DNA of 64,000 bases from Macrostomum lignano (GCA_002269645.1 NIVC01000263.1:186001-250000), one strand, 5' to 3'. Shown: positions 18,491-62,468, counted from the first letter of the stretch. Notes: generated from the letters alone by a model not told the origin. Numbers and translations: made by a program.

Positions 18491-19115
18491 GGGTGTGCAA
18501 AGTTCTAAATTTTTGGGAGTTTCTGCTAAGTGAAAAATAGTAAACTGCTTGTTAGCTGAATTAATAAAGCTTACAAGATCATGCAGTAGACAGCTTAGGC
18601 AAGTTGGTCATAGTTAATCCCATCAGTTATTTAATATAACTAGACAAACAGTGCAGGATTAAACTACTTATTAGTTTACAAGGCAACACAGTAGAATTTA
18701 CTCCTGCTGTTTACCCATTTGCCCCTGGAGGATTGGCAATGCTAGGTGCGCAAATGTGTCACACTTGGCATGTGTCCGCAGACTTTGAGAATTTATTCCA
18801 ATAGCCATCATTATTTGTTACTTTGCTGGTTACAAAACTTTGCATATATTCTGTCATGTTTTACCTTTTGATCTTGACATTGTTCAATTTTGTTCAACTC
18901 TGTATTGGTCTACAAACTACAGTACACTAAAAGAACTAATCCCAATTCCCGAGTCCTGATGCCAATCCCAATTCTGAGAAAAAAATCATTCCCGACACTA
19001 ATCCTTCAAATATTTTTATGTCTGCATATTCTATCTGCAAACTGCAAGTTGCTACTAATAGAGAATGAATTTTAGCAAATAAAAGGCAATAAATTGATCT
19101 GGTACAATTTTCCAG

Positions 19116-22100
19116 GAAATTGACGAACCCAACGCTTACCCCAAAGCCTCAATTGACGAGGCAAAGCCGTCAGCTGATGGCCTTGACAACGGGGAAGCCC
19201 AACAGGCGTCAGTTGGCGGCTTCACTCTCGTTCCCGATCGAACACGAAAGCGGCGCCGCGCGCCCCTCGGCGTCGGCTCAGCCGGCAGCGCCTACCGGCC
19301 CGAATGGATGCGCCGGCCGGTTGCTATTGACAACAGCTTAGACGCTTCCGTACCAATTGATTCCATTGACTGCCTGAGCGAGCCAATTCGTTCAGCGCTC
19401 AGATCCACCGGTGTGGAGACCCTGTTCCCTGTGCAGGCCACCTCCGTGCCCCTGGTGCTGGCGTCCCATCGGTACAGCTGGACTCGGCCGAGGGACTTCG
19501 CCGTGTGCGCGGCTACGGGCAGCGGCAAGACTCTGGCCTACCTGCTGCCGGCTCTGCAACTGCTGGCTGCCTGCAAAACTGTGGCTCTGAGGTGCATCAT
19601 TGTGCTGCCCGTGCGGGACCTGGCTATGCAGGTTTGTTTGCCGGCTTTTATTTATAGAAATCTTTTTGATGCCACTGGGGCTTGTCACTAATATAGGAAC
19701 TGCTTCTCCCATATTTGATACCTTTACCGAGCTCCTACTCCTCTGGTGAGATCGCGAGAATGATTACAAACTGTAAGCCATGTAAAAACAATCTAGCTAA
19801 CGGTTCCCCGCTAAAATCACAGTTTGTTGGCCCTTCTATCTAGCCAAAACCGCAATCGGAAGCTCCTAGCTACAATACCAATATCCTGGATCTTATAGCT
19901 TAATTAGAAATCTCATAATCCTTTAGCTAAATCCCAAAATTCCGATCCCCTAGCTATATCCCAATCTCCTGATCCCCCAGCTAAAATCCTAATGTTCTCA
20001 TCTCCCAGCTAAAATCCTAATGTTCTGATCCCCCAGCTAGAATCCCAATCTGCTGATACCCAGCTAAAATCCCAGTCTCCTGATCCACCAGCTAACATCC
20101 CAATCTCCGGATCCCCCAGCTAACATCCCAATCTGATCCCCCAGCTGAAATCCCAATCTCCTGATCCCCCAGCTAAAATCCCAATCTGCTGATCCCCCTG
20201 CTAGAATCCCAATCTCCTGATCCCGAGCTAACATCCCAATCTGCTGATCCCCCTGCTAGAATCCCAATCTCCTGATCCCCCAGCTAACATCCCAATCTCC
20301 TGATCCCCCAGCTAAAATCCCAATCTGCTGATCCCCAGCTAACATCCCAATCTGCTGATCCCCCTGCTAGAATCCCAATCTCCTGATCCCCAGCTAACAT
20401 CCCAATCTGCTGATCCCCCTGCTAGAATCCCAATCTGCTGATCCCCAGCTAACATCCCAATCTGCTGATCCCCCTGCTAGAATCCCAATCTGCTGATCCC
20501 CAGCTAGCATTCCAATCTCCTGATCCCCCAGCTAAAATCCCAATCTGCTGATCCCCCTGCTAGAATCCCAATCTCCTGATCCCCAGCTAACATCCCAATC
20601 TGCTGATCCCCCTGCTAGAATCCCAATCTCCTGATCCCCCAGCTAAAATCCCAATCTGTTGATCCCCCTGCTAGAATCCCAATCTGCTGATCCCCAGCTA
20701 ACATCCCAATCTGCTGATCCCCCTGCTAGAATCCCAATCTGCTGATCCCCAGCTAGCATTCCAATCTCCTGATACCCAGCTAACATTCCAATCTTCTGAT
20801 CCCCAGCTAACATTCCAATCTCCTGATCCCCAGCTAACATTCCAATCTCCTGATCCCCAGCTAACATCCCAATCTGCTGATCCCCCAGCTAGAGTCTCAA
20901 TCTCGTGATCTCCCAGCTAAAATCCCAATCATTCAATTTCCTAACCCTGACTGTCAGGTGCACCAGGTATGCCTCCGGCTGCTGGCCGCTCTGTCCGAGG
21001 GAGCAGCCGACTCGGACGGTTGTCGCCGCCAGATTCGCTGCCAGCTGCTGGTTGGCGAGCGCAGCCTGGAGAAGGAGCGGCACCAGCTGGTCCGCCTCAT
21101 GCCGGATGGCAGCTACCGCCCTCTGGCCGACCTGGTCATTTGCACGCCCGGCCGTCTGGCCGATCACCTGCTCAACTGTCCGGGATTGAGTCTGGCTAGG
21201 CTGCGCATGCTTATCATTGATGAGGCAGATCGGGTCATGGCCGAACAGAAGCAGGATTGGTTCGGACTGCTGGAACGGCTGCTGGACAGGTGAGGCCTGG
21301 GGTTTGGAGATGTTAATTAGCTTTGTGATGATCTGGGACTGGCGTGCTGTTTGAGTTTGGGTGTGGGTTTCTATTTCTCTGTGTTAGAATCTGGGTAGGG
21401 ATGGATTTACACTCGCAGACTGGGAATCCATGATGGGGATTTGGGATGGATATTGTACTTTGGTGCTTGGGATCATGGATAGAGAAGTGAATCGTGATGT
21501 ATTTGGGGCTAAGAATTTCTGGGATCTGGGCCTAGGAATCCCTGGGATCTGATACTAAGAATTCCTGGGATCTAGGCCTAGGAATCCCTGGGATCTGATA
21601 CTAAGAATTCCTGGGATCTGGGATTAGGATTCCCTGGGATCTGGGACTAGGAATCCATGGGATCTGGGACTATAAATTCCCGGTATATGGGACTAGGAAT
21701 TCCTGGGATATGGGACTAGGTCACTAGGAATCCATGAGATTTGGGACTAGGAATCCATGGGATCTGGGACTATAAATTCCCAGTATATGGGACTAGGTCA
21801 CTAGGGATCCATGAGATTTGGGACTAGGAATTCATGGGAGCTGTGACTAGGAATTGTCGGGATCTGGGACTAGGAATTGCCAGGAACTGGGACTAGGCAA
21901 ATGAATCTGGAATGGGGATTTTAAAATTGGTTTTCTTTTTACTAAAAATGCTGGCTGAATACAGACATTTTGACACGCGGGCAAAAAATAGATCATGGGA
22001 TAAATCATGTCAGCTTACAAATCCTCCTTATCTGAGCAGGCCGATGCCGCACCCCAGCATCCACTCGTGGCTGCACTCGAAGCCGCCGCACCTTCAGAAG

Positions 22101-24888: not shown

Positions 24889-25267
24889 TTTTAGTTTTTT
24901 GATCTTCCATTTGAAAGGAAACTGTTGGAATTATCTGGTCCCCCCCTGTGAGGCATTTCACTTTAACTAATTATATAACTGAAATTGTCAGCCTAGCCAA
25001 CAATTTTCATATGCATTTTTTGGCTGTACTGTGAGAAATGGCTCGACTTTTTTACTCTTACTCATTGATCGCAAAACCAATTAGAAATGCCAAAAACACC
25101 TAGACATCCCAAAACCAAATTCCCACACTTTCCAGAAATCCCAAAACCACCCAGAAATCCCAAAACTATTCAGGAATCCAGGAATCTCCAAATTATCCAA
25201 AACCGCCCACAAAGAATCCCAACAAACTAATATTTGGAAGCAGCTTAGCAACTCTGGATCCCAATTT

Positions 25268-27147
25268 ATGACCACTAATCCCCAAAGCGGCATGTCAGCA
25301 GACGAAGCAGCCGAGCCTATGGAAGAGGAGCTCAAGGAGGAACTCCCCAAATCCTCAACTGGGAAGTCGCTAAAGCCTGGAATTGTGTATCTGAGCAGCG
25401 TACCGCATGGTATGACGGTGAAACTGGTTCGGGAGCACCTCTCGCCATATGGAAACTTAGGGCGAGTTTTTTTGCAGGTTAGTTTTAAGAGCTGCCTTTT
25501 TTAGTGCTCTGCTCTGATTGGTTGAAATGCTACTCAAATCTGATTGGTTCGAATGGTACTGTAATCTAATTGCTTTACTGTGTTCTGATTGGATGGATTT
25601 TGCTTACTGTGTTCTGATTGGCTGGATTTTTCTTACTGTGTTCTAATTGGCTGGATTTTTCTTGCTGTGTTCTGATTGGCTGGATTTTGCTTGCTGTGTT
25701 CTGATTGGCTGGATTTTTCTTACTGTGTTCTAATTGGCTGGATTTTTCTTGCTGTGTTCTGATTAGCTGGATTTTGCTTGCTGTGTTCTGATTGGCTGGA
25801 TTTTTCTTACTGTGTTCTAATTGGCTGGATTTTTCTTGCTGTGTTCTGATTAGCTGGATTTTGCTTACTGTGTTATGATTGGCTGGATTTTGCTTGCTAT
25901 GTTCTGATTGGCTGGATTTTGCTTGCTATGTTCTGATTGGCTGGATTTTGCTTGCTATGTTCTGATTGGCTGGATTTTGCTTACTGTGTTCTGATTAGCT
26001 GGATTTTGCTTGCTGTGTTCTGATTAGCTGGATTTTGCTTACTGTGTTCTGATTGGCTGGATTTTGCTTGCTATGTTCTGATTGGCTGGATTTTTCTTAC
26101 TGTGTTCTAATTGGCTGGATTATTCTTGCTGTGTTCTGATTGGCTGGATTTTGCTTGCTGTGTTCTGATTGGCTGGATTTTGCTTGCTGTGTTCTGATTA
26201 GCTGGATTTTGCTTGCTGTGTTCTGATTGGCTGGATTTTGCTTGCTGTGTTCTGATTGGCTGGATTTTGCTTGCTGTGTTCTGATTGGCTGGATTTTGCT
26301 TGCTGTGTTCTGATTGGCTGGATTTTGCTTGCTGTGTTCTGATTGGCTGGATTTTGCTTGCTGTGTTCCGATTGGCTGGATTTTGCTTGCTGTGCTCTGA
26401 TTGGCTGGATTTTGCTTGCTGTGTTCTGATTGGCTGGATTTTGCTTGCTGTGTTCTGATTGGCTGGATTTTTCTTGCTGTGCTCTGATTGGCTGGATTTT
26501 GCTTGCTGTGTTCTGATTGGCTGGATTTTTCTTGCTGTGCTCTGATTGGCTGGATTTTGCTTGCTGTGTACTCATTGGGCTGGATTTTGTTAATTTTTTC
26601 TTATTGGCTGGATTGCTTTTTAAAATCAGCACTTCCTTCCCTGCATTTTTACCACGCAAAGGTCGACGAAGCATCGGCCCGCAAGCGCTGGCGGCTGTAC
26701 AGCGAAGGCTGGGCCGAATTCCTTCGCCGATCGGACGCAAAGCGTTGCGTCGCCTCCTTGAACGCCACCGAAGTAGCCGACAAGAAAAAGCCGTGGGCTG
26801 GCCAGCTGTGGAATCTGCGCTACCTGCCCGGTTTTGCCTGGACCGACATCACCTATAGAGAGGCCAACGAGAAAGCCGTTCGAAATAAGCGCCTGGCAAT
26901 GGAGATTCAGCAAGCTAGACGGATCGGCAAGCTCTACAAGGAATCCTTGGAGCAGTCGAAATCTCAGGACCGAGCTAAGCAAGCCAAGGGCGATCAGTTT
27001 CGACCTTTGCCGGAGTTGCAGCGGGTTGAACAGCGGCGTCGACGCGAACGGCGGAGCCGCAAGGGCGGCAACGATCGCGAGTTGCAGGCTGTTAATAATC
27101 CAACATTTTTGGAACAACTGCTAGGAGGCGGGCGAGGGAAATCTTGA
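25268..27147 (+). CDS. ABT1: Activator of basal transcription 1 / Esf2 pre-rRNA processing RRM protein; exons 25268(or 25292)-25477, 26662-27147
   Basis: KPGIVYLSSVP, YGNLGRVFLQ|, YSEGWAEF, KKKPWAGQLWNLRYLPGFAWTDIT and RLAMEIQQARR match ABT1/ESF2 family motifs. Phase-0 intron cag|gttagt ... gcaaag|gtc. Confidence 0.9.
25510..26600. repeat. 29-bp minisatellite in ABT1 intron
   Basis: CTGATTGGCTGGATTTTGCTTGCTGTGTT. Confidence 0.95.
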
Positions 27148-27164
27148 TATTTTGCTGGTCTTTG

Positions 27165-27462
27165 ATTGGCTGGAGCAGCTTAGCGTCAAGCGTTCTGTAA
27201 TTGGCTAGAAAAGTCAGACGTTCTCTAATTGGCTAGAAAAGCTAAGCGTCCTCTGATTGGCTACAAAAGCTAGGAGTTCTCTAATTGCCTAGAAAAGCTA
27301 GATATCCTCTCATTGGCTAGAAAAGCGAGGCATTCTCTAATTGGCTAGAAAAACTAGGAGTTCTCTGATTAGCTAGAAAAGCTAGATGTCCTCTCATTGG
27401 CTAGACAAGTTAGACGTTCTCTAATTGGCTAGAAAAGCGAGGCGTTCTCTAATTGGCTAGAA
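27165..27462. repeat. ~30-bp minisatellite 3' of ABT1
   Basis: TTCTCT(A/G)ATTGGCTAGAAAAGCTAG variants. Confidence 0.85.
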
Positions 27463-27827
27463 TAGGTAGGAATTTGTGACGGCTTATATTATATTACACT
27501 CATGCTGTTGCAACCCAGCTTGTTGGCCTCTCATTCACTCGTAAACGCAGCATTTTGCTAGTGAAAACTTGTACATTTAATAATGCGTATGAAATCTGCA
27601 CTGTCATAATTCATAATTGACTTGCGTATTTATTACGTAATGTTGACAGAAATATCCGGTTGCATTTTCCTTTGTCCGAGGCTCAGTCTGGTAACTAGAA
27701 ATATACTGACAAAGACTATTTTGCGTGCAACCCCAAAAATACAAACATTCTGTCTAGAAATAATTTCTTTGTCCTTGATTATGTTAGTTTGGCTTGACCA
27801 ATTTAAATATAGTGACTGTTAATGCTT

Positions 27828-28310
27828 CTTGTCACCCTCCTCTTTCTGTCACTTTGTTCGTCACTCCTTCCTGTCACTCTCCTCCTGTCACTCTCCTCTT
27901 CCTGTCACTCTGTCCGTCACTCTCTTCCTGTCACTCTGTCCGTCACTCTCCTCTTCCTGTAACTCTGTCCGTCACTTTCCTCTTCCTGTCACTCTGTCCG
28001 TCACTCTCCTCTTCCTGTCACTCTGTCCGTCACTCTCCTCTTCCTGTCACTCCCCTGTTTCTGTCAATCTGTCCGTCACTCTCTTCCTGTCACTCTGTCA
28101 CTCTGTTCGTCACTCTCCTCTTACTGTCACTCTGTTCGTCACTCTACTCTTACTGTCACTCTGTCCGGCACTCTCGTCCTCCTGTCACTCTGTCCGTCAC
28201 TCTCCTCTTCCTGTTACTCTCCTGTTACTGTCACTCTGTTCGTCACTCTCCTCTTACAGTCAATCTGTCCGTCACTCTCCTCTTCCTGTCACTGTCACTC
28301 TGTCTTCTCA
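27828..28310. repeat. Pyrimidine-rich TGTCACTC-based minisatellite upstream of GSS
   Basis: Recurring CTCTTCCTGTCACTCTGTCCGTCACT. Confidence 0.9.
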
Positions 28311-28399
28311 CTCTCCCAAGAATTCTATGGTCGCTACCCTACCCGCCTTGCCATCCCAGCCGTCTCCATAGCAACTAAAACTCATTCGCCCGCCCGCAG

Positions 28400-31135
28400 C
28401 AGCAGCACAGGCGCAACCCTTCTAGCGGGCTGACGGGAAGCCAGCAGGCCCGCCTGTCCAGTCTGGCCAGAGACCTGGCCTGCATGAACGGCCTGCTACT
28501 AAAAGACAATCCGGCATCCTCCTCGTCTGGTTCCGCCGCCCCCGACCGCTGCATGATGGCGCCAATCACCCTGGTGCCGTCCTCCTTCTCCAAGGAGGCG
28601 TTCAACCAAGCAGTTGAGCTGCAGGCCCTGTTCAACTCGCTGTACCACCGGGTGTCCCGGGATCACAACTTCCTGTGCCGGGTGATCCCACCTGCGGCCG
28701 AGTCGGACTCGTTCCTGTCCGCCCTGTGGGACATGTACCAAACTGTCCGGCAGTCTGGCGCTGACCAGCCAATCACTTTGGCTTTGAATCGAGCCGACTA
28801 TATGCTGGATGAAGAGGCCGGGCTTAAACAGGTGCGAGGGTGGTTGAGGGGGTTGGGGTTGCATTGGCATACAAAGTCTGTAGGAAATAAAATATTTGGG
28901 ATAATGTAACTCTGCAGTTTTTACCTATCGTAGCATTTTCTGGTGGCTCCAGGAAAATATTTTAAAGCTCTAAAAATCTTCAAGGTAAGATTTTTAAGCT
29001 AAGATAATCTTTAAAGTGAAATTTTGAAGCCTAGAAAATCTTCAAGGTCAGACTTTAAAGCCTAGAAAATCTTCAAGGTCAGACTTTGAAGCCTAGAAAA
29101 TCTTCAAGGTCAGACTTTGAAGCCTAGAAAATCTTCAAGGTCAGACTTTGAAGCCTAGAAAATCTTCAAGGTCAGACTTTGAAGCCTAGAAAATCTTCAA
29201 GGTCAGACTTTAAAGCCTAGAAAATCTTCAAGGTCAGACTTTGAAGCCTAGAAAATCTTCAAGGTCAGACTTTGAAGCCTAGAAAATCTTCAAGGTCAGA
29301 CTTTGAAGCCTAGAAAATCTTCAAGGTCAGATTTTGAAGCCCAGAAAATCTTCAAGGTCAGACTTTGAAGCCTAGAAAATCTTCAAGGTCAGACTTTGAA
29401 GCTCCAAATATCTCTTAAAGGTGAGATTTTGAATCTCAGAAAGTCTGCAGGGTGAGATTTTGAATTTGGAAGCAATGGATCTGGCATCTCTCCTTTCAAA
29501 ACAATCGCAGGTGGAAATCAACCTGATGGCATCCAGCTTCGGCGGCCTGGCCCAGCGCCTGTCGACTGTGCACCGCCAGGTGATGTCGGCCGCCGGTGTC
29601 AGCGAGCGCCAGCTGGCCCACCGGTTGCCCGACAACCGGCCAGCCGAGACCTTCGGCGAAGCCTTCATCCAGGCCTTCAAGCTGTACGGCCGGCCGGAAG
29701 CCGCCATCCTGTTCGTAGTGTCGCCAGACGAGCGAAATATTTTCGACCAGCGAACACTGGAAGCCGAAATCTACGCCGCCGACGCGTCGTCAGATTCGCC
29801 AGTTCACGTGCCGCAGATTCTGCGTCGGAGCTTCGACCAGATTGCCAGCTCGGCCCGACTGGAGGAGAGCTCCGGCCGGCTGTACCTGGCTGACCAGGAG
29901 GTGGCCATTGTGTACTACCGGCACGGCTACTCGCCCGATCACTTCTCCGACCCGGCCGGCGTGGCCTGGAGCGCCAAGCTGCTGATGGAGCGATCGCGGG
30001 CCATCAAGTGTCCGAGCCTGGCCTACATGCTGGCCAACACCAAGGCTGTACAGGCGGCGCTCTGCGAACCCGGCGCCGTGGCGCGCTATCTGCCGGGGAA
30101 GAGCGCCAAAGTTGAGGCCACGTTTGTTGATCAATGCGTGCTGAGCGACTCGAGGTGAGCTCAGGTTTTAGGTTTAGTTTTTAGGTTTTGGGTTTAGTTT
30201 TCAGGTTTTTAATTTAGTTTTCAGGTTTTGGGTTTAGTTTTCAGGTTTTGGGTTTAGTTTTCAGGTTTTGGATTTAGTTTTTAGGTTTTGGGTTTAGTTT
30301 TCAGGTTTTTAATTTAGTTTTCAGGTTTTGAATTTAGCTTCGGTTTCGGTTTTTGGTTTATTTTGAGTTTTGAATTTATTTTGGTATATCGTGTTATTTT
30401 TCAGTTTCAGTTTTGGGTTTAGTTTCAGTTTCGGTTTCGGGTTTAGTTTCACTTTCGGTTTCAGATTTAGTTTTAGTTTCGGTTTCCGGTTTACATGTAG
30501 TTTCATGCAGTTTCGGTTTCGGGTTTGGTTTTAGTTTCGGGTTTAGTTTCAGTTTCGGTTTCGGGTTTACATGTAGTTTGAGTTTCGGTTTTGGCTTTAG
30601 TTTGAGATTCGGTTTCGGTTTCGTTTGTATCTTCGATTTGAATTTGGTTCATCGTTTCGGTTTCAGTTTCAGTTTGAGCTGCAGCTAATTCTGCTGCATA
30701 TTCCTCCGCACAGCATGCATTTCATTCGATGCCCGCAGAGCGCACCGCTGGCTGCTGGCCGACCCCGAAGACTTCGTACTGAAGCCGCAGCGAGAAGGCG
30801 GCGGCAACAATATCTACGGCCGCGACGTGGTGGACTTCGCCAGCCGCCTGACAACCCGACAGTCGGCCGCGTACATCCTGATGCGGCGCATCCGGCCTCA
30901 GCAGCAGGTGTCGCTGATGCTCAAAGCTGATCAGCGGCTGTCCCGCCGGCCGGAGATGCCGCTGTGCGTGTCTGCGATCTCCGAGCTGGGCATCTACGGC
31001 GCTCTGGTGGCTAAGAACAACTCTGAGCGATTGAACTGCTCGGCTGGTCACGTGTTGAGAACGAAATCAGCGTTCACGGACGAGGGCGGGGTTGCCACGG
31101 GCTTCTCCTGCATAGATACTGTCTACCTGGTCTGA
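28400..31135 (+). CDS. GSS: Eukaryotic glutathione synthetase; exons 28400-28831, 29511-30154, 30739-31135 (start uncertain)
   Basis: APITLVPS, LALNRADYM, LKQ|VEINLMASSFGGL, RNIFDQR, YYRHGYSP, ERSRAIKCP, FVLKPQREGGGNNIYG, AYILMRRI, SELGIYG, GHVLRTK and EGGVATGFSCIDT. Exons total 1473 nt and are in frame. Confidence 0.95.
28960..29405. repeat. 31-bp minisatellite in GSS intron 1
   Basis: GCCTAGAAAATCTTCAAGGTCAGACTTTGAA. Confidence 0.95.
30160..30678. repeat. T/G-rich 20-bp then TTTCGG-type repeats in GSS intron 2
   Basis: GGTTTAGTTTTCAGGTTTTG grading into TTTCGGTTTC. Confidence 0.9.
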
Positions 31136-31244: not shown

Positions 31245-32142
31245 AATCCGAACCTGAACCCTAGCACCTGAGGAATCCGACCCTGAACTAAAACCTGAAC
31301 CCTAGCACCTGAGGAATCCGACCCTGAACTAAAAACTGAACCCTAGCACCTGAGAATTTGACCCTGAACTAAAACCTGAACCCTAGCACCTGAGGATTCT
31401 GACCCTGAACCCTAGCACCTGAGGATTCTGGCCCTGAACCCTAGCACCTGAGGATTCTGACCCTGAACCCTAGCACCTGAGGAATTCGACCCTGTACTAA
31501 AACCTGAACCCTAGCAACTGAGGAATTCGACCCTGAACTAAAACCTGAACCCTAGCACCTGAGGAATTCGACCCTGAACTAAAACCTGAACCCTAGCACC
31601 TGAGGAATTCGACCCTGAACTAAAACCTGAACCCTAGCACCTGAGAATTTGACCCTGAACTAAAACCTGAACCCTAGCACCTGAGGATTCTGACCCTGAA
31701 CCCTAGCACCTGAGAATTTGACCCTGAACCCCAACATCTGAGGATCTGACCCTGAACTAAAACCTGAACCCTAGCACCTGAGGAATCTGACCCTGAACTA
31801 AAACCTGAACCCTAGCACCTGAGGAATCCGACCCTGAACTAAAACCTGAACCCTAGCACCTGAGAATCTGACCCTGAACCCTAGCACCTGAGGAATTTGA
31901 CTCTGAACCCCTACATCTGAGGATTTGACCCTGAACTAAAACCTGAACCCCAACACCTGAGAATCCGGCACTGAACCCCAACACCTGAGAATCCGGCACT
32001 GAACCCCAACACCTGAGAATCCGGCCCTGAACCCCAACATCTGAGAATCCGGCCCTGAACCCCAACACCTGAGAATCCGGCCCTGAACCCCAACACCTGA
32101 GAATCCGGCCCTGAACCCCAACACCTGAGAATCCGGCCCTAT
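31245..32142. repeat. Compound minisatellite between GSS and LPCAT
   Basis: CCCTGAACTAAAACCTGAACCCTAGCACCTGAGGAAT grading into GAGAATCCGGCCCTGAACCCCAACACCT. Confidence 0.93.
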
Positions 32143-32893
32143 CTCACTGGATAGATAGAATTGTGTAATCTGGCCAAGTGTGCCAGATACTGTAGAGTAG
32201 CAGCACAGTTTGTGTGCTTACCTGTAATTTTTTAATATATTTTCCAGATTGCAATGCAGCACCTCTATGTATTGATGCGTAGATTTTCTATAATGCAATA
32301 AATCCTGAATTAATTTTCTGAGTTCGAACCCGGGACCTCTTGTGTGTCCCGCAATTGTTTTTTCTATTTGAACTTCAGTTTAGCAATTCCCGACTGTTGG
32401 AGAATTGGCAAGTTAAAACAAAAATTTAAGCTAAATCACGGCTAATCTATAAACCTATATAGATATATTATGTATTATAATTTACTATCAATTGCATATT
32501 ATTATTCTATGTTATCTGTGGTGCTATCCAGCGCTGATACAAATGCCTTAATTTTATTTATAAAAACCTTTTTGTATTTTCCTTCGTTATTCGTCTGAAT
32601 TTATTCTATCTTAAACACTCCGCTGGCACTTAATCTGAATTTACCTGTGCGTAACTTTTGTTCACTTCTTTTTTATCCCAAGGCGACAGTAATAATGCAA
32701 CCTGAAAATTGCGTGTTGCAATGCTGACGTTTTCTTTGCAAATATATAAGATAACTGCGGATATTAATGTAGCCTCTATAACCAAAGGCTACATCATTTT
32801 ATGATTGATAAATCATTGAAATTACCATATTTCACCGATTGTTTCAGCAATTCAGACTACTGATATTACTTTAGTAGTCAATTGAAATTATCA

Positions 32894-33300
32894 CCCCACC
32901 TCTCCAACGTACACTCCACTCCCGACCAACCCCACTCCCCAATGTACACTCCACTCCAGACCAAATCCACCTTCCCAATGCACACTCCACTCCCGACCAA
33001 CCCCACCCCCAATGTACACTCGCTCCCGACGAACTCACCTCCCCAATGTACACTCCATTCCCGACCAACCCCACCTCCCTAATGTACACTCCACTCCAGA
33101 CCAAATCCACCTCTCCAATGTACACTCCACTCCAGGCCAAATCCACCTCTCCAATGTACACTCCACTCCCGACCAACCCTACTCCCCAATGTACACTCCA
33201 CTCCAGACCAACCCCACCTCCCCAATGTACACTCCATTCCAGACCAAACCCACCTCCCCAATTTACACTCCACTCCCTACCAACCCCACCTCCCCAATGT
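32894..33300 (+). repeat. 36-bp minisatellite upstream of LPCAT exon 1
   Basis: CCAATGTACACTCCACTCCCGACCAACCCCACCTCC. Confidence 0.93.
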
Positions 33301-33452
33301 AAATTCCACTCAGATAACCCTCATTCTAATGTAAAAAGCTGCAGTACTGGACCAGACAAAATCGATTTAAAATATTGTTAGAGAATAATCGTGCTAGACT
33401 ACTCGCATCAGCCACAACAATCTCTGTTGACGCCGCCGCCGCCGTCTTTCAG

Positions 33453-36400
33453 GGGCAGCCGTCGTCCAGCGGTGACTCGGCCGTCACGGCAGACACGGCC
33501 GACGCCTGCGTCTGCTCGCTGCCTCTGCCGCCTCGGCCGTTCAATCCGTTTTACCATCGGGCGGGCTTCTTCTGGTACCACTATCTGACTGTGCCCCTGC
33601 TCGGCTTGCTGCTGTTCCCCGTGCGGCTGCTTCTGCTGATCCTGTCGCTGGCCTTGGCTTTCCTGGTGTCTTTTGTCACCCAGATTGGGGCAAAGCCACC
33701 GCGCCTCTGTCTCCTTGGCGGAGGTGAGGTTTTTGGGGGTGGCCGCAGCAGCCTGGGCCCAGAAAAACCGTGCTTCGAGTTCAATTCTTTGTTATCCGAC
33801 GTGAGCAGAAGGTGCAGGCAGGATGGACACAAAATCCTACCTGTTACATGGAGTGTACATTGAGGAGGTGGGGTTGGTCGGGAGTGGAGTGTACATTGGG
33901 GAGGTGGGGTTGGTCGGGAGTGGAGTGTACATTCGGGAGGTGGGGTTGGTTTGGAGTGGAATGTACATTGGGGAGGTGGGGTTGGTCGGGAATGGAGTGT
34001 ACATTGGGGAGGTGGGGTTGGTCGGGAGTGGAGTGTACATTGGGGAGGTGGGGTTGGTCGGGAGTGGAGTGTACATTGGGGAGGTGGGGTTGGTCGGGAG
34101 TGGAGTGTACATTCGGGAGGTGGGGTTGGTTTGGAGTGGAGTGTACATTGGGGAGGTGGGGTTGGTCGGGAGTGGAGTGTACATTGGGGAGGTGGGGTTG
34201 GTCGGGAGTGGAGTGTACATTCGGGAGGTGGGGTTGGTTTGGAGTGGAATGTACATTGGGGAAGCGGGGTTGGTCGGGAATGGAGTGTACATTGGGGAGG
34301 TCGCTGGAGCTTTGCACAGCTTTGCATAAAAATGCACATTGCAAAGGCTGCTACCTACAGGAAAAAAGAGTACCTTTACACCCCAATATCCAGCTGGGTG
34401 GCGGATCACCTGCTGCTCAACATCGGCCGCATGGGGGCGTTCGTGGGCGGCTACCAGCGAATTCACCTGAAAGGCCGGCGCGCCAGCGTCCGCGAGGCGC
34501 CTCTGCTGGTGGCGGCGCCGCACACCTCCCTGACTGACACGGTGGTGTTCTTCTGCCAGCGCCCGATGCTCGCTCCGGTGACCAAGGCGCCGAAGAATTT
34601 CTTTTATAATGGTGTGCTTATTAATAGTTTTTGCAAGCACGTCCCTATTAGTCACTGTAAACAGTCTTAAATAGGGTCTTTCAACAACACCTCCAGGCAG
34701 TTCACAGCCCCAATAGCCGGCAGTTCACAGCCCCCAATACCTGGCAGTTCACAGCCCCCAATACCTGGCAGTTCACAGCCCCCAATAGCCGGCAGTTCAC
34801 AGCCCCCCATACCTGGCAGTTCACAGCCCCCAATAGCCGGCAGTTCACAGCCCCCCATACCTGGCAGTTCACAGCCCCCAATAGCCGGCAGTTCACAGCC
34901 CCCAATAGCCGGCAGTTCACAGCCCCCAATAGCCGGCAGTTCACAGCCCCCAATAGCCGGCAGTTCACAGCCCCCAATAGCCGGCAGTTCACAGCCCCCA
35001 ATAGCCGGCAGTTCACAGCCCAATACCCGGCAGTTCACAGCCCCCAATAGCCGGCAGTTCACAGCCCCCAATACCCGGAAGTTCACAGCCCAATATCCGG
35101 CAGTTCACAGCTCCCAATAGCCGGCAGTTCACAGCCCAATACCTGGCAGTTCACAGCCCCCAATACCCGGCAGTTCACAGCCCCCAATACCCGGCAGTTC
35201 ACAGCTCCCAATAGCCGGCAGTTCACAGCCCCCAATACCCGGCAGTTCACAGCCCCCAATAGCCGGCAGTTCACAGTCCCCAATACCCGGCAGTTCACAG
35301 CCCCCAATACGCGGCAGTTCACAGCCCAATATCCGGCAGTTCACAGCCCCCAATACCCGGCAGTTCACAGCCCCCAATAGCCGGCAGTACACAGCCCCCA
35401 CTTGCCCTGTCCCGCAGTGATGGTGCCAGCAGGCGAGGCGGTGGTGGTGTACCGGGACAATCGCCGGATGCGCGCCAAAGCGGCCGAGGAAATTGTAGAC
35501 AGGGCGCGCAGCTGCCTGAATGGCGGAGGCTTCCGCCAGCTGCTGGTCTTCCCCGAAGGCACGTGCACCAATGGCGGGGCGCTGATCGGCTTCCGTCTGG
35601 GCGCCTTCGCTCCCGGCGTCCCGGTGCAGCCGGTGCTGGTGCGGCATCGGGATCCCCTGCAGCTGCAGTGCTGGGCTGTTGACGGGCCCTCCATGTGAGT
35701 AGTAGATCGGGGGGGGATATTTATCCCATCGTAAGCCATCATATCCCAATTAAAATGATATCATATCCCGTTATTTGCAGGTTCCATATGATCTTCAGGT
35801 GCGGCTCTCGGGTTTACTCTGAGCTGCACGTTGAGGTTTGTACCGGTATAGACACAGTAATTCGCAACAGTGCAGGTAGCTTAATCTTAATAGCTTAATA
35901 CTAAATGTTCATAAACCCACATCTGAGAACCGGTCCTGAACCCACACCTGAGAACCGGTCCTGAACCCACTCCTGAGAACCGGTCCTGAACCCACACCTG
36001 AGAACCGGTCCTGAACCCACACCTGAGAACCGGTCCTGAACCCACACCTGAGAACCGGTCCTGAACCCACACCTGAGAACCGGTCCTGAACCCACTCCTG
36101 AGAACCGGTCCTGAACCCACACCTGAGAACCGGTCCTGAACCCACACCTGAGAACCGGTCCTGAACCCACACCTGAGAACCGGTCCTGAACCCACACCTG
36201 AGAACCGGTCCTGAACCCACACCTGAGAACCGGTCCTGAACCCACACCTGGAATTCCACCCTTAACCAAACTTGAAACCCGTTTTGTAATGAGGCTTTCC
36301 TGTCCCCAATCTTCATTCCCAATCAACCTGCCGCTGCAGTTCTTACCTGTGTATCATCCGTCGGCTGAAGAGCGCGCCAATCCACAGCTTTACGCCAACA

Positions 36401-36911: not shown

Positions 36912-36944
<33 letters not shown>

Positions 36945-38315: not shown

Positions 38316-39506
38316 TTATCGTTTTGTTAACCACGGTGCAACTGAGGCGAACCACTTGGCCACCTTAGCGCCGCCGTAGCGCACGGACTTGAGCACACCA
38401 GCTGTGACGGCGCTCTTCGCCGTTTGGCCGAGGCTGGACCTGGACACGATACGACGAAGTCGACTCCGTAGAATTTTGGCGATGTCACGCGCGCTGGCGC
38501 CGGATTGCAGTGGCGCAGTGAGCTCCGAGGCCAGCGGAGCCGGCAGGCAGGCAATAAGCTCGGCCAGCTGGTCGGGTTCGGCCGTCCAAGTGATGACGTC
38601 ATCGTTGGAATCAGCGGAGTCTTGTTGCTGCCAGGTAAGAAAAGGCAGTCGTTTAGCGGCCAGCGGACGGTAGATGTCTGTCAGCAGCGGCGCCTGCGGC
38701 ACGGCGATGTTCTGGACCTGAGAATTGTATTCGTGAGACCGACAACTAACAAGTAGTAAGAAAAAAGCATATCACTCCGCTCCATTAATTAATTTACTAG
38801 CTGGTAAACTCTACACAAAAGTTGCTACGGCAATTTTTTAGATAACTGCCCGTTTCAAAGAAAAGGTGTCAAAAATATTTGAACCAGAAAACCATCGCAC
38901 CTTGCCGGAGTCCTCAGCAAAGGCCATCCGAACGTCGCCACCGTAGCTGAGCCCGCAGACGGCCGCCAGCAGGCGTCGTCGATCAACCCGACTGTCCGGC
39001 AGCAAAGTCAGCAGACCCGCGGCGAGTGCCGCCGTCCGGTTGGCATCCAAAGCTTCAGATAATCTCGGACAGTCTTGGCCAGTACTGTCCGGCTCAACAA
39101 CCCAGGCAACGGGCTTGTGCAGCCGGCCGGCTAGGTACAGCCAGCGCCACTCGGTCAGATCAGCCAGCAGAGAGTCGACGCTGACCACGCCGTACTTCAC
39201 TGTCCGGCCCTCGGCCGCGGGCACCAGCGTATTGAAATAAACACCGGCTCCGAGACCCTCCTGTATGCGGGCGACCGCGCCAGCACCCAGACTGCCCAAG
39301 CCGGAATAGTGCGACCGGTGTCTGGCCAGGTTGGCCTCGTGCCAAGCTCGACTGTCCGGCACCACGAACACTAGGTCTAGCATGCCACTGCCGCGGACCC
39401 GGCCAGACTGTTCAAACACCGCCGAACCGTAGGCGAAGCAGGCGCTCATTGGCTGAGGAAAAGAGCCGACTATGCGCCGGAGTAGCCGCAGCGTCGGCTC
39501 GCTCAT
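38316..39506 (-). CDS. TAMM41: Mitochondrial phosphatidate cytidylyltransferase Tam41; exons 38901-39506, 38316-38717
   Basis: FAYGSAVF, MLDLVF, GVYFNT, KYGVV, LYLAGRLHKPV, LSYGGDVRM..ED..K|VQNI and C-terminal QTAKSAVTAGVLKSVRYGGAK. 335 aa, phase-0 intron. Confidence 0.92.
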
Positions 39507-39544
39507 TCGGGCCGCTGAAGAGTGGAAGAGTGAAATGTGTGGTG

Positions 39545-39725: not shown

Positions 39726-40410
39726 TGGAAGCAATAGGTAAAAAGTTATTTGATTGATGAATACTGAAGTTTAGTAGCTGGTTTAGCTTCAACTAGTTGT
39801 CAGTTTCAGGGCAGAAAACGGCTCTTTATTACTGGCAACTGACAATTTGCCAGTAATTGATGATAGTAAGTAGCAGTGAAAACTCTGCTGACAAATATAT
39901 TTTAGTTCAACTGTAAACAATAACAACTTTTTTGCTTTACGTTTAAAAGAAATAACAAATAAGACAGAAATTAAAACAAAAAGAATTGATATATGACGGA
40001 TAAAGCAAGGCGGCTCAAGTCGCTCCTTCATGCAGAAGCATGTTCGATTTTATTGTCAAAGAAGCCGCATTTATTCTTTTAAAATTCACTTGCTTTATGA
40101 CAAAAAATCAAATAGTCTCTTTAAATGCATCGAAAATTCCCTCGCGTATTAACGTTCCTCGCGACGTTGCTAATTATAAAAATTGCTACAATAGAGACGC
40201 CGCGGCACATGCATTTAAAGGTACTTCAGATCAAGATGGGCTGCAGCAACAAGAGAGCGCTTTGCTAAGTGTCGATAATGGCGAGCTTAGAAGATAAAAA
40301 AGGAAATTGAGTAAAGACAGTAGATGGATGAGCAGTCACATACAGATTTCACCGCAAACTACACCACATCAAAATCATCATTTAAACAAGAATTGAAGCT
40401 ACCCAACAGG

Positions 40411-46906: not shown

Positions 46907-49516
46907 CTACTGCTGAGGCATATGCTTGGGCCGGACCTCCTGGTCGCTAGTGTACCGAATAAACACGCTGTCTTCAACCCGCTGCTGGCCAGTCGCGCTC
47001 TCCTCGCCCTGCTCAAACATATAGGAGGCCGCCACAGCCAGCATGCTGCCGTCGTCAGCGAATGCCAACGCCGAAATTGATGTTGGAAATTTGTGCAGCT
47101 GCATCAGCCGCTTCCGATTGAAGCCGTCCCAGATGTTAACCATGCAGTCGCTGCCGCCGGTCGCGAACGTGTTAAACTGACGGTGAAAAGCCACAGCGTT
47201 CACCGGATGGATTTCCTCCGCGTCCTGGGTCTTCACCCGGTGGCACTTAAAGGCGTACTTTTTCGCTTGAACTTCCGGATTGGTGTCGAAGAATTCTACG
47301 GCCACTCGGCCCTCGATTGAGGACAGGACGTAGCCCTGCAAGGCCAGGCGATTAGGTCATGAACTGCAAGTTCCAAACTGCCTACTTCCAGTACTATGAT
47401 GATATAATCACTAACTTACTCGACCTTTGCTGAACTAAACTACAAGTTCAGCATAATTACTCAGCTTACACTTCCCTGCATATCTCTGCACCCTTGTTCC
47501 TAAATCTTCCTTATTCCTCTCCCTACAAGCTCCTACACCCTGTCCCTTCACTCAACTCCCTACACCCTGTCCCTTCACTTAGCTCCCTACATCCTGTCCC
47601 TTGACTCAGCTCCCTGCACCCTGTCCCTTCACCCAGCTCCCTGCACCCTGTCCCTTCACCCAGCTCCCTGCACCCTGTCATTTCACCCAGCTCCCTGCAC
47701 CCTGTCCCTTCACCCAGCTCCCTGCACCCTGTCCCTTCACCCAGCTCCCTGCACACTGTCCCTTCACCCAGCTCCCTGCACCATGTCCCTTCACCCAGCT
47801 CCCTGCACCATGTCCCTTCACCCAGCTCCCTGCACCATGTCCCTTCACCCAGCTCCCTGCACCCTGTCCCTTCACCCAGCTCCCTGCACCCTGTCCCTTC
47901 ACCCAGCTCCCTGCACCCTGTCCCTTCACCCAGCTCCCTGCACCCTGTCCCTTCACCCAGCTCCCTGCACACTGTCCCTTCACCCAGCTCCCTGCACCAT
48001 GTCCCTTCACCCAGCTCCCTGCACCATGTCCCTTCACCCAGCTCCCTGCACCATGTCCCTTCACCCAGCTCCCTGCACCATGTGCCTTCACCCAGCTCCC
48101 CAGCCAGATTTCCCCAAAAGTCCCCTCCCCAGCACTTGCCTGTTTATTTGGAAAGCAGCGTAAGCAGCGGGTCTGATATTTCAAGCTGGACTCTCTGGTC
48201 TGCTGCGGCTGAGTCATCTGTCTCAAATCCCAGACAAGAACGTGCCGGCCAGCCGTACCAACAACCAGATGGTGCCCGGCAGTATCCAGGGTGTAAACCT
48301 TGTCCGGCTGCTGGTGCATGGAGCTGAATGCGGGCGCCCTGGTGTCCCAAAGCTTTACGGAGCTGTCCCACGAGCCCGTCACCAGCTGATTCGTGTCCGC
48401 GGAGAAGTGAACGCATCTGATTGGTCGGTCGTGATAGCCGACTACGATATCTGCGGGGCGATCGGAGAGTGCGGTTTTGAAGGCCGATTTTTGGGGCGAT
48501 TCGATGGCGAATTTATTAACAATTTTATTAGGTGATATAATACCTATTCTAACGGGTGATATAATGCTGATTCTAATGGGTTACATAATGTCTATTCTAA
48601 TGGGTGATATAAAATTTAAAGCGACAGGAGCTCACAACGTCACCAACCTTTGCCGGCGGTCCAGTCGTAGCCCAGCAGAACGCAGTCCAAGCCGCCACTG
48701 AAGGACCTGGCAGCCTCCTGAGAGGATGAATTTATAATAATTTATATAATAACTATAAAAATTAACAAGCATAAGGGACAACCGACTTTCAGGCTACTAG
48801 CTTGTACACCTGCAGGCTACTACCTTTTACGCCTTCAGGCTAGTACCTTGTACACCCTCAGGCTAGTACCTTGTACGCTTTCGAGCTAGTACCTTTTACG
48901 CCTTCAGGCTACTACCTTGTACACCTTCAGGCTAGTACCCTGTACGCCTTCGGCTACTACTTTATAGAACTTCAGACTACTACTATACACTTCAGGCTAT
49001 TACCTTGTACGCCTTCAGGCTATTACCTTGTACACCTTCAGGCTAGTACCTTGTACGCCTTCAGGCTAGTACCTCGTACACATTTAGGCTACAACCCTAG
49101 TGAACTTTAGGCCTTCAGCTTTGGAGCTTCAGGTTACGAACTCCCCTTCAGGCTACTACCTTATACACCATCAGGCTTTTAGCTCATTAACATTCAAGCT
49201 TCTAAACTTCAGACTAAAAACTCGTTCAGCTTCAGGCACTCATCCGTAAACATTTCCCTAACCCAAGCCAACCCTCAGAGCTCCGCTTGTACCACAAGAA
49301 TCTCACAGAGAAGTCGCAGTCCAACACAGGCTGCTGATGATAGTAGGTGGACCGCAGTGAATTCTTATTCACATCGTACAGCCGCACGGAGCCGTCCCAG
49401 CTGGACACCAGCAGGTGCTGGCAAGAGTTCGGCTGGAATTTCACCGCGCTGATGCCGTCTTCCGGCGGCTCCTTCAGGCGCACCTCAGTTTGCAATCCAC
49501 CGTCACCCGATGACAT
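46907..49516 (-). CDS. BUB3: Mitotic checkpoint WD40 protein BUB3; exons 49307-49516, 48648-48717, 48140-48450, 46907-47335
   Basis: PPEDGISAVKF, LLVSSWDGSVRLYD, TGSWDSSVKLWD, RESSLKYQTRC, FPNKQ|GYVLSSIEGRVAVE, KKYAFKCHR and FATGGSDCMVNIWD. 339 aa. Intron 3 has a GC donor. Confidence 0.96.
47525..48100. repeat. 27-bp minisatellite in BUB3 intron 3
   Basis: CAGCTCCCTGCACCCTGTCCCTTCACC. Confidence 0.95.
48788..49200. repeat. 23-bp minisatellite in BUB3 intron 1
   Basis: CAGGCTAGTACCTTGTACGCCTT. Confidence 0.9.
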
Positions 49517-49555
49517 TGCGGTTGCTGAAGTTGCAGCCGGGTAGAGCGGGGTAAG

Positions 49556-59055: not shown

Positions 59056-61269
59056 AACTGATACAACCATGATAAATATGAACAAGCCTAACTAAGCCTT
59101 CCACTTTTGCACAAAGGTATTCTTTCATTCTGAATCTTTCATTCACTGATTCAGAATCCAACTCATTTTCCCGTTGGATAAGCTTGATTGAGTGAAATCA
59201 GATTAAACGAAGCGATGCGCAGGAGAAAAAATGAATATGAAGAATACAAACTTACTTGATTTGCTTTATTTTTTAACAAGATTAAACAACAATTCGCCCT
59301 AATCATTATCTTCAAAAGCACACGAATCATTTTACCTTAAATTTTTTTACCTTGCTATACCTATAACTGATATTGTGGTCACTAGCCCAAGCAGCGTACG
59401 CAAGTTTAAACAAGTCTCGGATTTTTTTACGTTTAAATGATTTTTCTATTCATAAAGCCATGGATAAACAAAAAATGTTCTTTTAACAGTATAAAATTTG
59501 TATATAAAGTTTTGTCATCGCTAAGCATTGCGTCTGCTACACCATTAGGTTTGGTCCATTTTTGACTCTTAGCTTACATGGGTTCCGGCTTTCGTGAAAA
59601 CTGAAATTCATGAGCATTCATTTTTTGAAGAATGTATTTTCTGAGAAATATTAAACTGTCAAATTTTAGAACTTAAACAAGAATTGCGAGCTCTAGAGCG
59701 TTATGGACATTTATTCACTCATTCATTCAATAAAACATACAAACCTTAAGAGATTTAGTATATTTAGATTTTAGTATGGTAAATGAATCACACTGGCTTA
59801 AAAGCATACTTGGACTGACTGTATTAGCTGACCATTTATAGCTGATATTAGCATTTAGCTAATATTTTTAGTATATTAGATAGCAAATTAGCTGATATCC
59901 ATTCCCTATCCCAAAAATCTGCTTTAATGTCTATATGGCTATACCTAACCTAATCTAATGACTGTTGACTATATAATTAATGTAATATTTATTGTAAGAA
60001 GATTAATTGTAAGATACCTCATAAATAATCTTCCTTCACAAATCACAACCAACACGAAAACTTAGACAACACCCCATGTGTACCATGTTGTTGCTACCCA
60101 TCTTATATCAATTGAATCTATTATTGCACCAGACTCCTTAAAACTATATCTTCTTTTTGTATTTTCTTGCCTGTTTTCATTTACAAATGCCAGTGCAATT
60201 GCTACTGCATTACATATATATTCGTATAGGCCTACTGTAAATACTTTAATTGCAAAAATTAATGCTTATCTAAAAATTTTTTTAAATGCCCTCTTTTCAT
60301 TTGTTTCTTCTTTTAAAAATATCCTTTAGTTTTTAATGCCTAATACAAGTAATATTGTTAACTATTTATGCATCTAGATATTTGATATTAACTGAATACA
60401 TAGAAACTTTTTTTTAATTATCTACTAGAAGAATTGTTCTCTTTCAATGATCAAGTTCATATAATACCTGTTTTTCAATTCCTTGTTTAAATACTTTTCA
60501 TTTTGTTAGCTGTTAAACTTAAATTTTGTTCAAAGATTTGTAAAAAATCTTTAGCCACTCTTTTAAGGTTTCAAGGTTAACAGGGGATTTTTTAGATTTT
60601 AAGGCTTTTTGGGGCATCTAAGACTAAGGCATCACTGAGATGTCAAGGAGGGGAGGTTGGTATGTTAAGGCTCGTGGGGGGATTGCTGAGATGTCAGGCT
60701 TATAAAGAATTGCTGGGGTTATCGCAAAGAGATGCTATATGTAGTTTATTTAAATTTTTGTACTGCATTTTTGGCTCCCCAATGAGGGCACTGCTTGCTA
60801 GTTTACTAATTTTAAATCCAACTAAGTATCCGTTAGTACCATAAATACCTATTTTACCATAGTTGGTATAATATCTAATAGGCTATGGCCATAATTATAG
60901 TAAAAGACAAGTGAAGTTTGTGTGCTTAGTTGTAGCTAGCTTACTTAGCTTAGCTGAAGAGGACATCAATGTATCTAGATATAAGATATAGCACAGGCAT
61001 TGCCACCCATTCTATTAACCCTTGGCAATAACTAGAGATCTAGTTTGCAACACAACCTTTTCTAGAGTGTCTAGGAATTGGATAGTAGCTCACCCAGTAG
61101 CCTAAAAAACTTTGTAAAGATCACGTTTGTCCAGGGTAAGCAAGTAAGGCAGGTAGATAAAGTGATTGGCATTCTTAAATCTTTAATAACAATTTATTAA
61201 AATACGAGTTTATTCTCAAAGTCCTACTATAAGTAGTAGACTGAAGTTAGAAAATCGTGTCACTTCCAG

Positions 61270-62468
61270 GAGGGGCCAGACACCAGCGGCTGGCTGCCAG
61301 AGCAGGTCAACGAGCTCGAGCTGCTCAAGCAGCGAAAGCGAACCCTGGAAATTGAGCTGACCGAATTGCGCACCGAGCTGGAGTCGCTTGATCGCGAAAT
61401 TCGCGAGATGGACATCGGCGGTGGTGGCGGCGGTGGCGAAGCTTTTGAAGCGACAAGTCAGCGGGATAAGGTGCGTCTGGCTGTTTGCCAAGTGATCAAC
61501 TTTTTTACTGTTATTTCGATTATAAATATAAATACGAAATATGGCCTGAAAATCTAGGATTCTAGAAAAAAATTGTCATTTTGATTGCCAGTCTGCTAGC
61601 TTAACTAACCAGGCTGCCATTTTGCTTGTCAAAATGCCATTTTGCTTGTCAAAATGCCATTTTGCTTGTCAAAATGCCATTTTGCTTGTCAAAATGCCAT
61701 TTTGCTTGTGAAAAATCCATTTTGCTTGTCGGAAAGCCATTTTGATTGTTAGACTGCCATTTTTACCGCAGACTGCCATTTTGACTGTCAGACTGCCATT
61801 TTTACTGTCATACTGCCATTTTGACTTTCAGACTGCCATTTTTACTGTCAGATTGGAATTTTGACTGTCAGACTGCCATATTTACTGTCAGACTGCCATA
61901 TTTACTGTCAGACTGCCATTTTGACTGTCAGACTGCCATTTTTACTGTCAGACTGCTATTTTCACTGTCAGACTGCCATTTTTACTGTCAGATTGCCATT
62001 TGGACTGTCAGACTGCCATTTTGACTGTCAGACTGCCATTTTGACTGTCAGACTGCCATTTTTACTGTCAGACTGCCATTTTTACTGTCAGACTGGCATA
62101 TTGTTTGTCAGATTGACTGTCAGACTGGCATTATTGCCAGCTTATTGCCATTTCTATACCACTCCACCAACTCAACAATTCAGGCCCTGCTCACAGGCCG
62201 CAACAAGTTCAATTTGAAGCCGGCCACAGGCATCGCCTACCTGGTTGAGCAGGGCCTGCTTGAGAACACTCCAGCCGCCGTGGCCAGCTTTCTATTTCAG
62301 TCCACCAATCTCAGCAGGCGGGCAGTCGGGGACTACTTCGCGCACAGCAAGCCCTTCAACGTGCAGACCCTGGAAGCCTTCGCCGGCCTGTTTAACTTTG
62401 CCGGCAAAAAGTTGATGCAGGCGTTGAGAGAATTTTTGGGCACCTTTGCCCTGGCCGGGGAGAGCCAG
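61270..62468 (+). CDS. CYTH: Cytohesin/ARNO-like ARF guanine-nucleotide exchange factor, 5' part (coiled coil + first half of Sec7); exons 61270-61470, 62184-62468; continues beyond window
   Basis: Coiled coil EQVNELELLKQRKRTLEIELTELRTELESLDREI, then GRNKFNLKPATGIAYLVEQGLL, VASFL, LSRRAVGDY and ALREFLGTFALAGESQ| with the catalytic Glu of the FRLPGEAQ motif. Confidence 0.85.
61575..62150. repeat. 20-bp minisatellite in cytohesin intron 1
   Basis: TGCCATTTTGCTTGTCAAAA grading to TGCCATTTT(G/T)ACTGTCAGAC. Confidence 0.93.

Follow-up and report, generated by a model that had tools for sequence, protein, structure and literature searches.

The stretch of DNA analysed in this study (64,000 nt, hereafter the window) comes from the flatworm Macrostomum lignano (NIVC01000263.1:186001-250000, assembly Mlig_3_7, GCA_002269645.1), and its positions 18418-41135 (22.7 kb) were 100% identical to that contig. 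The plus strand carries four conserved genes, an RNA helicase of the DDX51 type, a glutathione synthetase (GSS), an acyltransferase of the LPCAT type and a cytohesin. M. lignano UniRef proteins (the A0A1I8... series, which we take to derive from the older ML2 assembly) named RNA helicase, glutathione synthetase, PlsC-domain acyltransferase and SEC7-domain protein are 91-100% identical to the four first-exon translations. The proteins of the window agree with M. lignano proteins at 99-100% identity. A first-pass annotation of the window had described the four genes as lacking a genomic start codon and opening at phase-0 splice acceptors, and had proposed that the initiator AUG is donated by a trans-spliced leader (spliced leader, SL). 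On recheck the stops, AG acceptors, reading frames and absence of ATG were exact at every coordinate. Each of the four acceptors opens the conserved open reading frame (ORF) in phase 0, with no intervening stop, the exceptions being one GSS acceptor (exon start 28411) and a frameshift in LPCAT.

The region is present in two further Mlig_3_7 copies, one on NIVC01000266 and NIVC01000052 (loci L002 and L005) and the other on NIVC01000536 (loci L003 and L004), with 94-99% identity to the window near the sites of interest. Three copies fit the large-chromosome duplication reported for DV1, the line that was sequenced (PMC8629364). RNA-seq was the basis of the Mlig_3_7 annotation, in which transcript ends were cut at mapped SL sites, and Pilon polishing of the assembly used Illumina DNA reads together with RNA-seq reads (PMC5730564). 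The protein clusters of the four genes contained NCBI and UniRef genome-derived models and no transcript-assembly members, and the gene ids of these loci were not found in paper texts or in the supplements of PMC5730564.

According to PMC8629364, M. lignano has a single SL of 35 nt, CGGTCTCTTACTGCGAAGACTCAATTTATTGCATG, with the 3' end ...TTGCATG. The terminal ATG is the only one in this sequence, so every trans-spliced mRNA would have it as its first AUG. Trans-splicing affects about 30% of M. lignano genes, and the motif [T/C]TNCAG is enriched at their acceptors (PMC8629364). All reported flatworm SLs end in ATG (PMC12582326), and a Macrostomum genome paper regards the final ATG of the SL as a likely start codon (PMC10468722). 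Initiation at an SL AUG was reported in 2006 in Schistosoma mansoni (Cheng, Cohen, Ndegwa & Davis, J Biol Chem 281:733, via PMC9851317 and PMC12582326), in which the SL AUG falls in frame for 28% of trans-spliced transcripts and over 40 cDNAs need it (Cheng 2006 via PMC9851317). No SL RNA gene was found in the window by a search allowing up to 3 mismatches.

In DDX51, the in-frame TGA stop (19095-19097), the end of the outron and the acceptor caattttCCAG occupy positions 19095-19115, and the AG at ttttccag/GAA (exon start 19116) is the only one between the stop and the ORF. Exon 1 extends to the donor 19631/gt and would encode M-EIDEPNAYPK... with the SL AUG; its first in-frame ATG lies at 19308. 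GC content increases at the acceptor from 0.27 upstream to 0.52 downstream. The best non-Macrostomum matches of the helicase are named DDX51, and in the alignment with Echinococcus DDX51, whose N-terminus is similarly short, VGGFTLV pairs with IGGFTV and PEWMRRPV with PFWMSSPV. The first genomic Met falls within the second of these motifs. A start donated by the SL AUG is likely for DDX51.

The GSS 5' end consists of an in-frame TAA stop followed by the tandem acceptors cgcag/cag/cag/cacag/ (28376-28410), and this arrangement is identical in the three copies. Exon starts at 28400, 28403 and 28406 are in phase 0, and the start at 28411 is in phase 2 and would give MAQPF-stop. Exon 1 (28400-28831, donor 28831/gt) would begin M-QQHRRNPSSG... 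with the SL AUG, and its first in-frame ATG is at 28484. The protein matches human, plant and yeast GSS structures with E values of 1e-62 to 1e-84. Counted from the acceptor, residue 17 aligns to residue 16 of human GSS and the first genomic Met is residue 29. Two UniRef models (P0002 and P0018) begin exactly at 28400. An SL-donated start is reasonably probable for GSS, the weakest of the four cases. Both internal in-frame ATGs of this exon lie in TGCATG (28481-28486 and 28550-28555, Cys-Met), as at the SL end. When considered as traces of the SL these sites were rejected; the UniRef models carry them too, and they were taken as genuine and coincidental.

LPCAT has an in-frame TAA stop at 33327, an ATG-free stretch and the acceptor gccgtcTTTCAG (33327-33452), which matches the motif and, as tctttcag/GGG at 33453, has the highest pyrimidine content among the candidate AGs (0.75). 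Exon 1 (33453-33723, donor 33723/gt) contains no in-frame ATG and would encode M-GQPSSSGD..., an NPF motif and a transmembrane (TM) helix. The acyltransferase matches LPCAT1/2/4 orthologues with E values of about 1e-50, and it aligns with animal LPCATs over the NPF motif as well as the TM helix (LFPVRLL...). The first-pass annotation placed the first Met downstream of the TM anchor, and this was borne out in the intact paralogous protein, in which the first Met lies beyond both elements. The NCBI model PAA81356 (L003) begins GQPSS, directly 3' of the acceptor. A run of four G at 33688-33691 of the window, where both paralogous copies have five, causes a 1-nt frameshift in exon 1, and the NCBI model on the window contig consequently starts at the exon-2 Met (34431). 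The shortened run may be a long-read homopolymer error or may mark a truly broken copy; the L003 copy is intact. A start donated by the SL AUG can be held with good confidence for the gene family, not necessarily for the window copy. A PDB search gave no LPCAT or DDX51/Dbp6 relatives usable for N-terminal alignment.

In the cytohesin gene, an in-frame TAG stop at 61237 and the acceptor gtgtcacTTCCAG occupy 61237-61269, the acceptor cttccag/GAG at 61270 containing the motif match TTCCAG. GC content rises sharply there, as at the DDX51 acceptor. Exon 1 (61270-61470, donor 61470/gt) would encode M-EGPDTSGWLPEQVNELELLKQRK... and a coiled coil. The protein matches cytohesin-3 (E 1e-69). In the alignment to a cytohesin-3 chain that is nearly full-length, its residue 20 (21 if the SL Met is counted) pairs with residue 17 of that chain. 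Residue 47, inside the coiled coil, is the first genomic Met (ATG 61408). The NCBI model PAA92392 begins EGPDT. A start donated by the SL AUG is very likely for cytohesin. The acceptor is a tandem CAG/GAG/ (61268-61275), and the NCBI models of the paralogous copies begin EGPDT and GPDT; the difference might come from alternative use of two in-frame acceptors spaced by 3 nt, or from noise at the model ends.

Every AG between the in-frame stop and the first conserved residue was listed for each gene. In DDX51, LPCAT and cytohesin the AG named by the first-pass annotation proved to be the motif-matching, pyrimidine-rich one at the edge of the ORF (TTCCAG, TTTCAG and TTCCAG respectively), giving a match to [T/C]TNCAG in three of the four genes. 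Three of the four acceptors also provide G at +4, as had been claimed. Phase 0 was found at 5/7 of the SL-type 5' ends surveyed (P=0.045, with the acceptors partly chosen by phase) and is by itself weak evidence.

Several results indicate that the segments between the acceptors and the first ATGs are coding. In all four genes, alignments revealed conserved orthologue sequence ahead of the first genomic Met. Substitutions in these segments were read off alignments of the paralogous copies, and the expected synonymous fraction was computed separately; 7/11 substitutions were synonymous and 4 were not, against 26% synonymous expected (P=0.01). The synonymous excess implies that the segments are coding, in the frame set by the acceptors. 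Their third codon positions are high in GC. The coding sequences (CDSs) deposited at NCBI on the three copies are flagged partial and have no upstream exon, and no model in any copy has a Met start upstream of the internal ATGs. The models start 0 nt after the acceptor in LPCAT (L003) and cytohesin (L005), 1-3 nt after it in cytohesin L004 and in the ESF2/ABT1-like gene between DDX51 and GSS, and 15-24 nt after it in GSS and DDX51. The UniRef models read IFQ/EIDEP, QQHRRN, ...VFQ/GQPSS and FQ/EGPDT at their beginnings, without Met.

The junction itself is marked in the assembly of the cytohesin copies. The window reads gtgtcacTTCCAG/GAGGGG, whereas L004 and L005 both read gtgtcacTGCATG/GAGGGG, so that TTCCAG is replaced by TGCATG, the last 6 nt of the SL (L004:5992-5997 and L005:5995-6000, corresponding to 61264-61269 of the window). 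This replacement comprises three changes in four bases within a surrounding 360 nt that are 98-99% identical, and FQ, i.e. TTCCAG, stands in each of the three UniRef cytohesin models. The difference is most simply explained if RNA reads carrying the SL replaced the bases immediately 5' of the trans-splice site, which would place the SL junction exactly at 61270. A smaller footprint was found at DDX51, one base in one copy. L003 has TTCCTG/GAA (CCTG for CCAG) where the window has TTCCAG/GAA, and the A-to-T change at -2 (equivalent to 19114 of the window) gives the SL base; the UniRef model of the L003 haplotype reads IFQ, i.e. CAG. The overwriting at trans-splice sites is most likely due to the Pilon polishing with RNA-seq reads. 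It destroys AG acceptors and makes false genomic ATGs in Mlig_3_7. Other TGCATG sites were rejected as footprints, as about 25 occur in the window, roughly the chance level; the one at 56879 is a synonymous CAT/CAC difference in a coding exon of TMEM164. No prior report of such an artefact was found among the titles returned by a limited literature search.

Taken together, we consider that DDX51, GSS, LPCAT and cytohesin take their initiator AUG from the trans-spliced SL with a probability of roughly 0.75. The proposal of the first-pass annotation is thus supported by an SL ending in ATG, acceptors carrying the motif, gene models without an upstream exon and the cytohesin and DDX51 footprints. 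In the mechanism proposed, DDX51, the ESF2-like gene, GSS and probably LPCAT would be transcribed as one same-strand polycistronic unit, and the pre-mRNA would be cut at the 3' acceptor abutting each coding start and joined to the 35-nt SL. A scanning ribosome would then meet the SL AUG first and in frame, producing M-EIDEP (DDX51), M-QQHRR (GSS), M-GQPSS (LPCAT) and M-EGPDT (cytohesin); the predicted N-terminal peptides with the SL Met include MEGPDTSGWLPEQVNELELLK and MQQHR. Trans-splicing at the GSS and LPCAT acceptors is presumed, and we infer initiation by ribosomes at the SL AUG from the scanning model and from precedent. The earlier wording that these genes are untranslatable without the SL goes too far, since internal AUGs could give truncated proteins. 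Without the SL, only such N-terminally truncated products would be expected from them, and the part of the claim that stands is that the full-length protein needs the SL.

A number of observations weigh against this interpretation. NCBI models start inside exon 1, 24 nt past the acceptor in DDX51 and 15-18 nt past it in GSS, and the published pipeline may have called no SL site at these two acceptors. The idea that these starts mark other acceptors was considered and rejected, for no AG precedes them; the models appear to have been cut short at their ends. In GSS the acceptor departs from the motif, and of the four tandem AGs one is out of frame. The window LPCAT as assembled loses its frame 235 nt past the exon start, beyond roughly residue 80, and its ORF ends at 116 aa, and the DDX51 copy at L002 (NIVC01000266) has a 1-nt deletion 22 nt into exon 1 (about position 1824, equivalent to 19138 of the window). 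This deletion breaks the frame set by the acceptor, and the NCBI model of L002 therefore starts at an internal Met (MRRPVAID). No SL footprints were seen at the GSS and LPCAT acceptors in the copies compared, and the footprints found elsewhere would be indirect RNA evidence for trans-splicing. The base at -3 of the SL AUG is a weak one (U). Use of this AUG may be helped by the G found at +4 in three of the four genes. In two minus-strand genes of the window (Tam41 and a Bub3-like WD40 gene, described below) the SL AUG would be out of frame, from which it follows that ribosomes can bypass it, in keeping with the weak -3 U. Finally, cis- and trans-splicing often use common acceptors in parasitic flatworms (PMC12582326).

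These points bear on the alternative explanations to different degrees. Were the first genomic AUGs the true starts (19308 MRRPVAID in DDX51, 28484 MNGLL in GSS, MGAFVGG of exon 2 in LPCAT and 61408 MDIGG in cytohesin), the open stretch before them would be a 5' untranslated region kept open by chance. Internal-Met models do exist at NCBI (PAA86752 for DDX51, PAA86813 and PAA86749 for LPCAT), and an SL AUG of poor -3 context that is skipped in Tam41 and the Bub3-like gene could be skipped here too. These models, however, are confined to copies with a frame-breaking indel, and the residues before the ATGs include the N-terminal helix of GSS, the coiled coil of cytohesin, the NPF motif and TM helix of LPCAT and the GGFT and PxW motifs of DDX51, all conserved in distant orthologues. 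The synonymous excess and the high third-position GC likewise speak against starts at internal AUGs, which we consider very unlikely. Loss of the start codons through assembly or annotation error, with ATGs removed by long-read indels or by polishing, would be in line with the 1-nt coding indels of Mlig_3_7 and with its RNA-derived overwriting beside splice sites. Against this, three Mlig_3_7 copies and the separate UniRef series share the layout without ATG, and the polishing artefact adds apparent ATGs (cytohesin L004/L005 and ESF2 25268) and does not remove them, making such an origin highly improbable.

An unannotated upstream cis exon with its own ATG, in which case the acceptor would be used in cis, alone or also in trans, is most plausible for GSS or DDX51. 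The first-pass annotation had itself noted a possible GSS micro-exon at 27502-27540, and this candidate is intact in all three copies. It failed on closer inspection, being only one of 11 ATG.../GT phase-0 candidates in the 1.25-kb spacer, a chance expectation, and having no model support. The sharing of acceptors between cis- and trans-splicing in flatworms, the UniRef model P0014, which cis-splices DDX51 onto the ESF2 acceptor, and the lack of an SL footprint at the GSS acceptor also favour this explanation. An upstream exon is, however, found in no RNA-based model, in either annotation series or in any copy, and the predicted GSS and cytohesin N-termini are co-terminal with their orthologues within 2-4 residues. 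We regard an upstream exon as unlikely. Non-AUG initiation within exon 1 of a non-trans-spliced mRNA would formally agree with the absence of ATG, with nothing specific in its favour, and is unnecessary given an AUG-ending SL on about 30% of mRNAs and the footprint at the cytohesin junction; it appears scarcely credible.

Initiation at the SL AUG in these genes would be a new set of examples of a known flatworm mechanism and not a new kind. As in the S. mansoni system (PMC9851317 and PMC12582326), there is an AUG-ending SL, an in-frame acceptor, an ORF without genomic start and, by prediction, an SL-derived Met-1. The present host differs in being a free-living macrostomorph with one 35-nt SL, the use of the AUG is predicted here, and the four genes have not previously been described in this role. 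The in-frame share is 5/7 of the surveyed 5' ends in a small window, compared with 28% in S. mansoni. The concept is the same as that of the slORFs of Song et al. (2023), whose leader-donated start becomes visible only after the SL joins the acceptor. Their program slORFfinder relies on SL reads and ribosome footprints and was run on nematodes, ascidians and euglenozoans, not on flatworms (PMC9851317). The layout agrees with that of M. lignano operons (Wudarski 2017, PMC5730564; Ustyantsev & Berezikov 2021, PMC8629364), in which conserved housekeeping genes with [T/C]TNCAG acceptors follow one another on the same strand, separated by spacers that are short once repeats are subtracted. The searched text of both papers contains no analysis of SL-AUG reading frames and no list of dependent genes, and the models were left 5'-partial. 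In the annotation of Macrostomum cliftonense and M. hystrix (PMC10468722) the ATG was kept on the reads as a probable start, a remark in a figure legend without gene-level analysis.

If the interpretation is right, four (perhaps five) conserved housekeeping genes depend on trans-splicing for full-length translation, in the one flatworm in which transgenesis is available for testing. It would account for the UniProt and GenBank entries without an initiator Met or with internal-Met starts, and the LPCAT protein would include its N-terminal TM anchor and the cytohesin protein its coiled coil. Two classes of error are also flagged in Mlig_3_7, namely indels of 1 nt in coding sequence and overwriting by the SL beside trans-splice sites. 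That the SL AUG is the usual, not occasional, initiator for trans-spliced conserved genes of M. lignano is a tentative suggestion, based on five of the seven surveyed SL-type 5' ends being in frame, four of them without a nearby genomic ATG, and it hints that dependence on the SL AUG may be commoner here than in Schistosoma. Were this true genome-wide, thousands of genes would be start-less and dependent on trans-splicing for the full-length protein, a large share of the protein models deposited for M. lignano would lack Met or be wrongly shortened, and RNA-seq polishing would have written false ATGs and erased AG acceptors at highly expressed trans-splice sites.

The ESF2/ABT1-like gene is the possible fifth case. 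Its 5' end (25268-25483, plus strand, exon start 25271) reads M-TTNPQSGMSADE..., with an apparent ATG at 25268-25270. At the junction (25265-25270) the window and L003 have AATTTATG/ACC and L002 has AATTCATG/ACC (TTTATG in the window, TTCATG in L002 and TTTATG in L003), and the copies thus approach the SL end GCATG stepwise. The NCBI CDS starts at 25274, 3 nt past the exon start, and the fused UniRef DDX51-ESF2 model P0014 requires an AG at the ESF2-like exon start. On the basis of the graded copies, the CDS start and the AG required by P0014, the ATG at 25268 probably represents a TTTCAG acceptor that was altered towards the SL sequence by polishing. Three UniRef models (P0001, P0014 and P0015) fuse the DDX51 donor 24875/24876 (GAA/gttgac) in frame to ESF2 at 25271 (...KDKSKE/TTNPQSG...). 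Fusion onto a presumed trans-splice acceptor could be an operon read-through isoform or a prediction artefact.

The NCBI ids Mlig005657 g1, g2 and g3 assign DDX51, ESF2 and GSS to one transcription unit, and the gene annotation places nothing within 10 kb upstream of DDX51. The DDX51-ESF2 gap is 382 nt. The ESF2-GSS gap measures 1252 nt including 742 nt of tandem repeats (repeat-adjusted about 510 nt), and the GSS-LPCAT gap is 2317 nt with about 1309 nt of repeats (adjusted about 1.0 kb). Operons in M. lignano are defined by genes on the same strand, repeat-adjusted spacing below 1 kb and trans-splicing of the downstream genes (PMC8629364). The spacing of DDX51, ESF2 and GSS falls within this definition and that of GSS and LPCAT is borderline; trans-splicing of the downstream genes is presumed. 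Cytohesin is separate, 24 kb downstream of the DDX51-LPCAT series. Tandem arrays of 28-41-nt units fill introns and intergenic spacers (25570-26614, 27191-27469, 27831-28293, 28961-29464, 31251-32140, 32893-33311 and many others), as with the 36 copies of a 29-mer within the ESF2-like intron, and they lengthen the spacing between the operon genes.

Two genes on the minus strand provide the contrast cases. Tam41 (39504-39516) has the acceptor cttcag (AG 39516-39515), followed after 8 nt by its own ATG (39506-39504), and the Bub3-like WD40 gene (49514-49526) has the acceptor acttcag (AG 49526-49525), followed after 8 nt by its own ATG (49516-49514). Both acceptors match [T/C]TNCAG, and in neither gene would the SL AUG be in frame. 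In Tam41 it would open an upstream ORF, M-R-P-E-stop, whose UGA overlaps the main AUG (AUGA). The Tam41 models on L002 and L003 begin at the first complete codon past the acceptor. About 280 nt upstream of the Tam41 acceptor, a small minus-strand ORF (39792-40208, CFCMKERLEPP... with a hydrophobic tail) was observed, which could be an upstream operon partner of Tam41. The TGCATG sites near it, at 40029 and 40208, are kept in all three copies.

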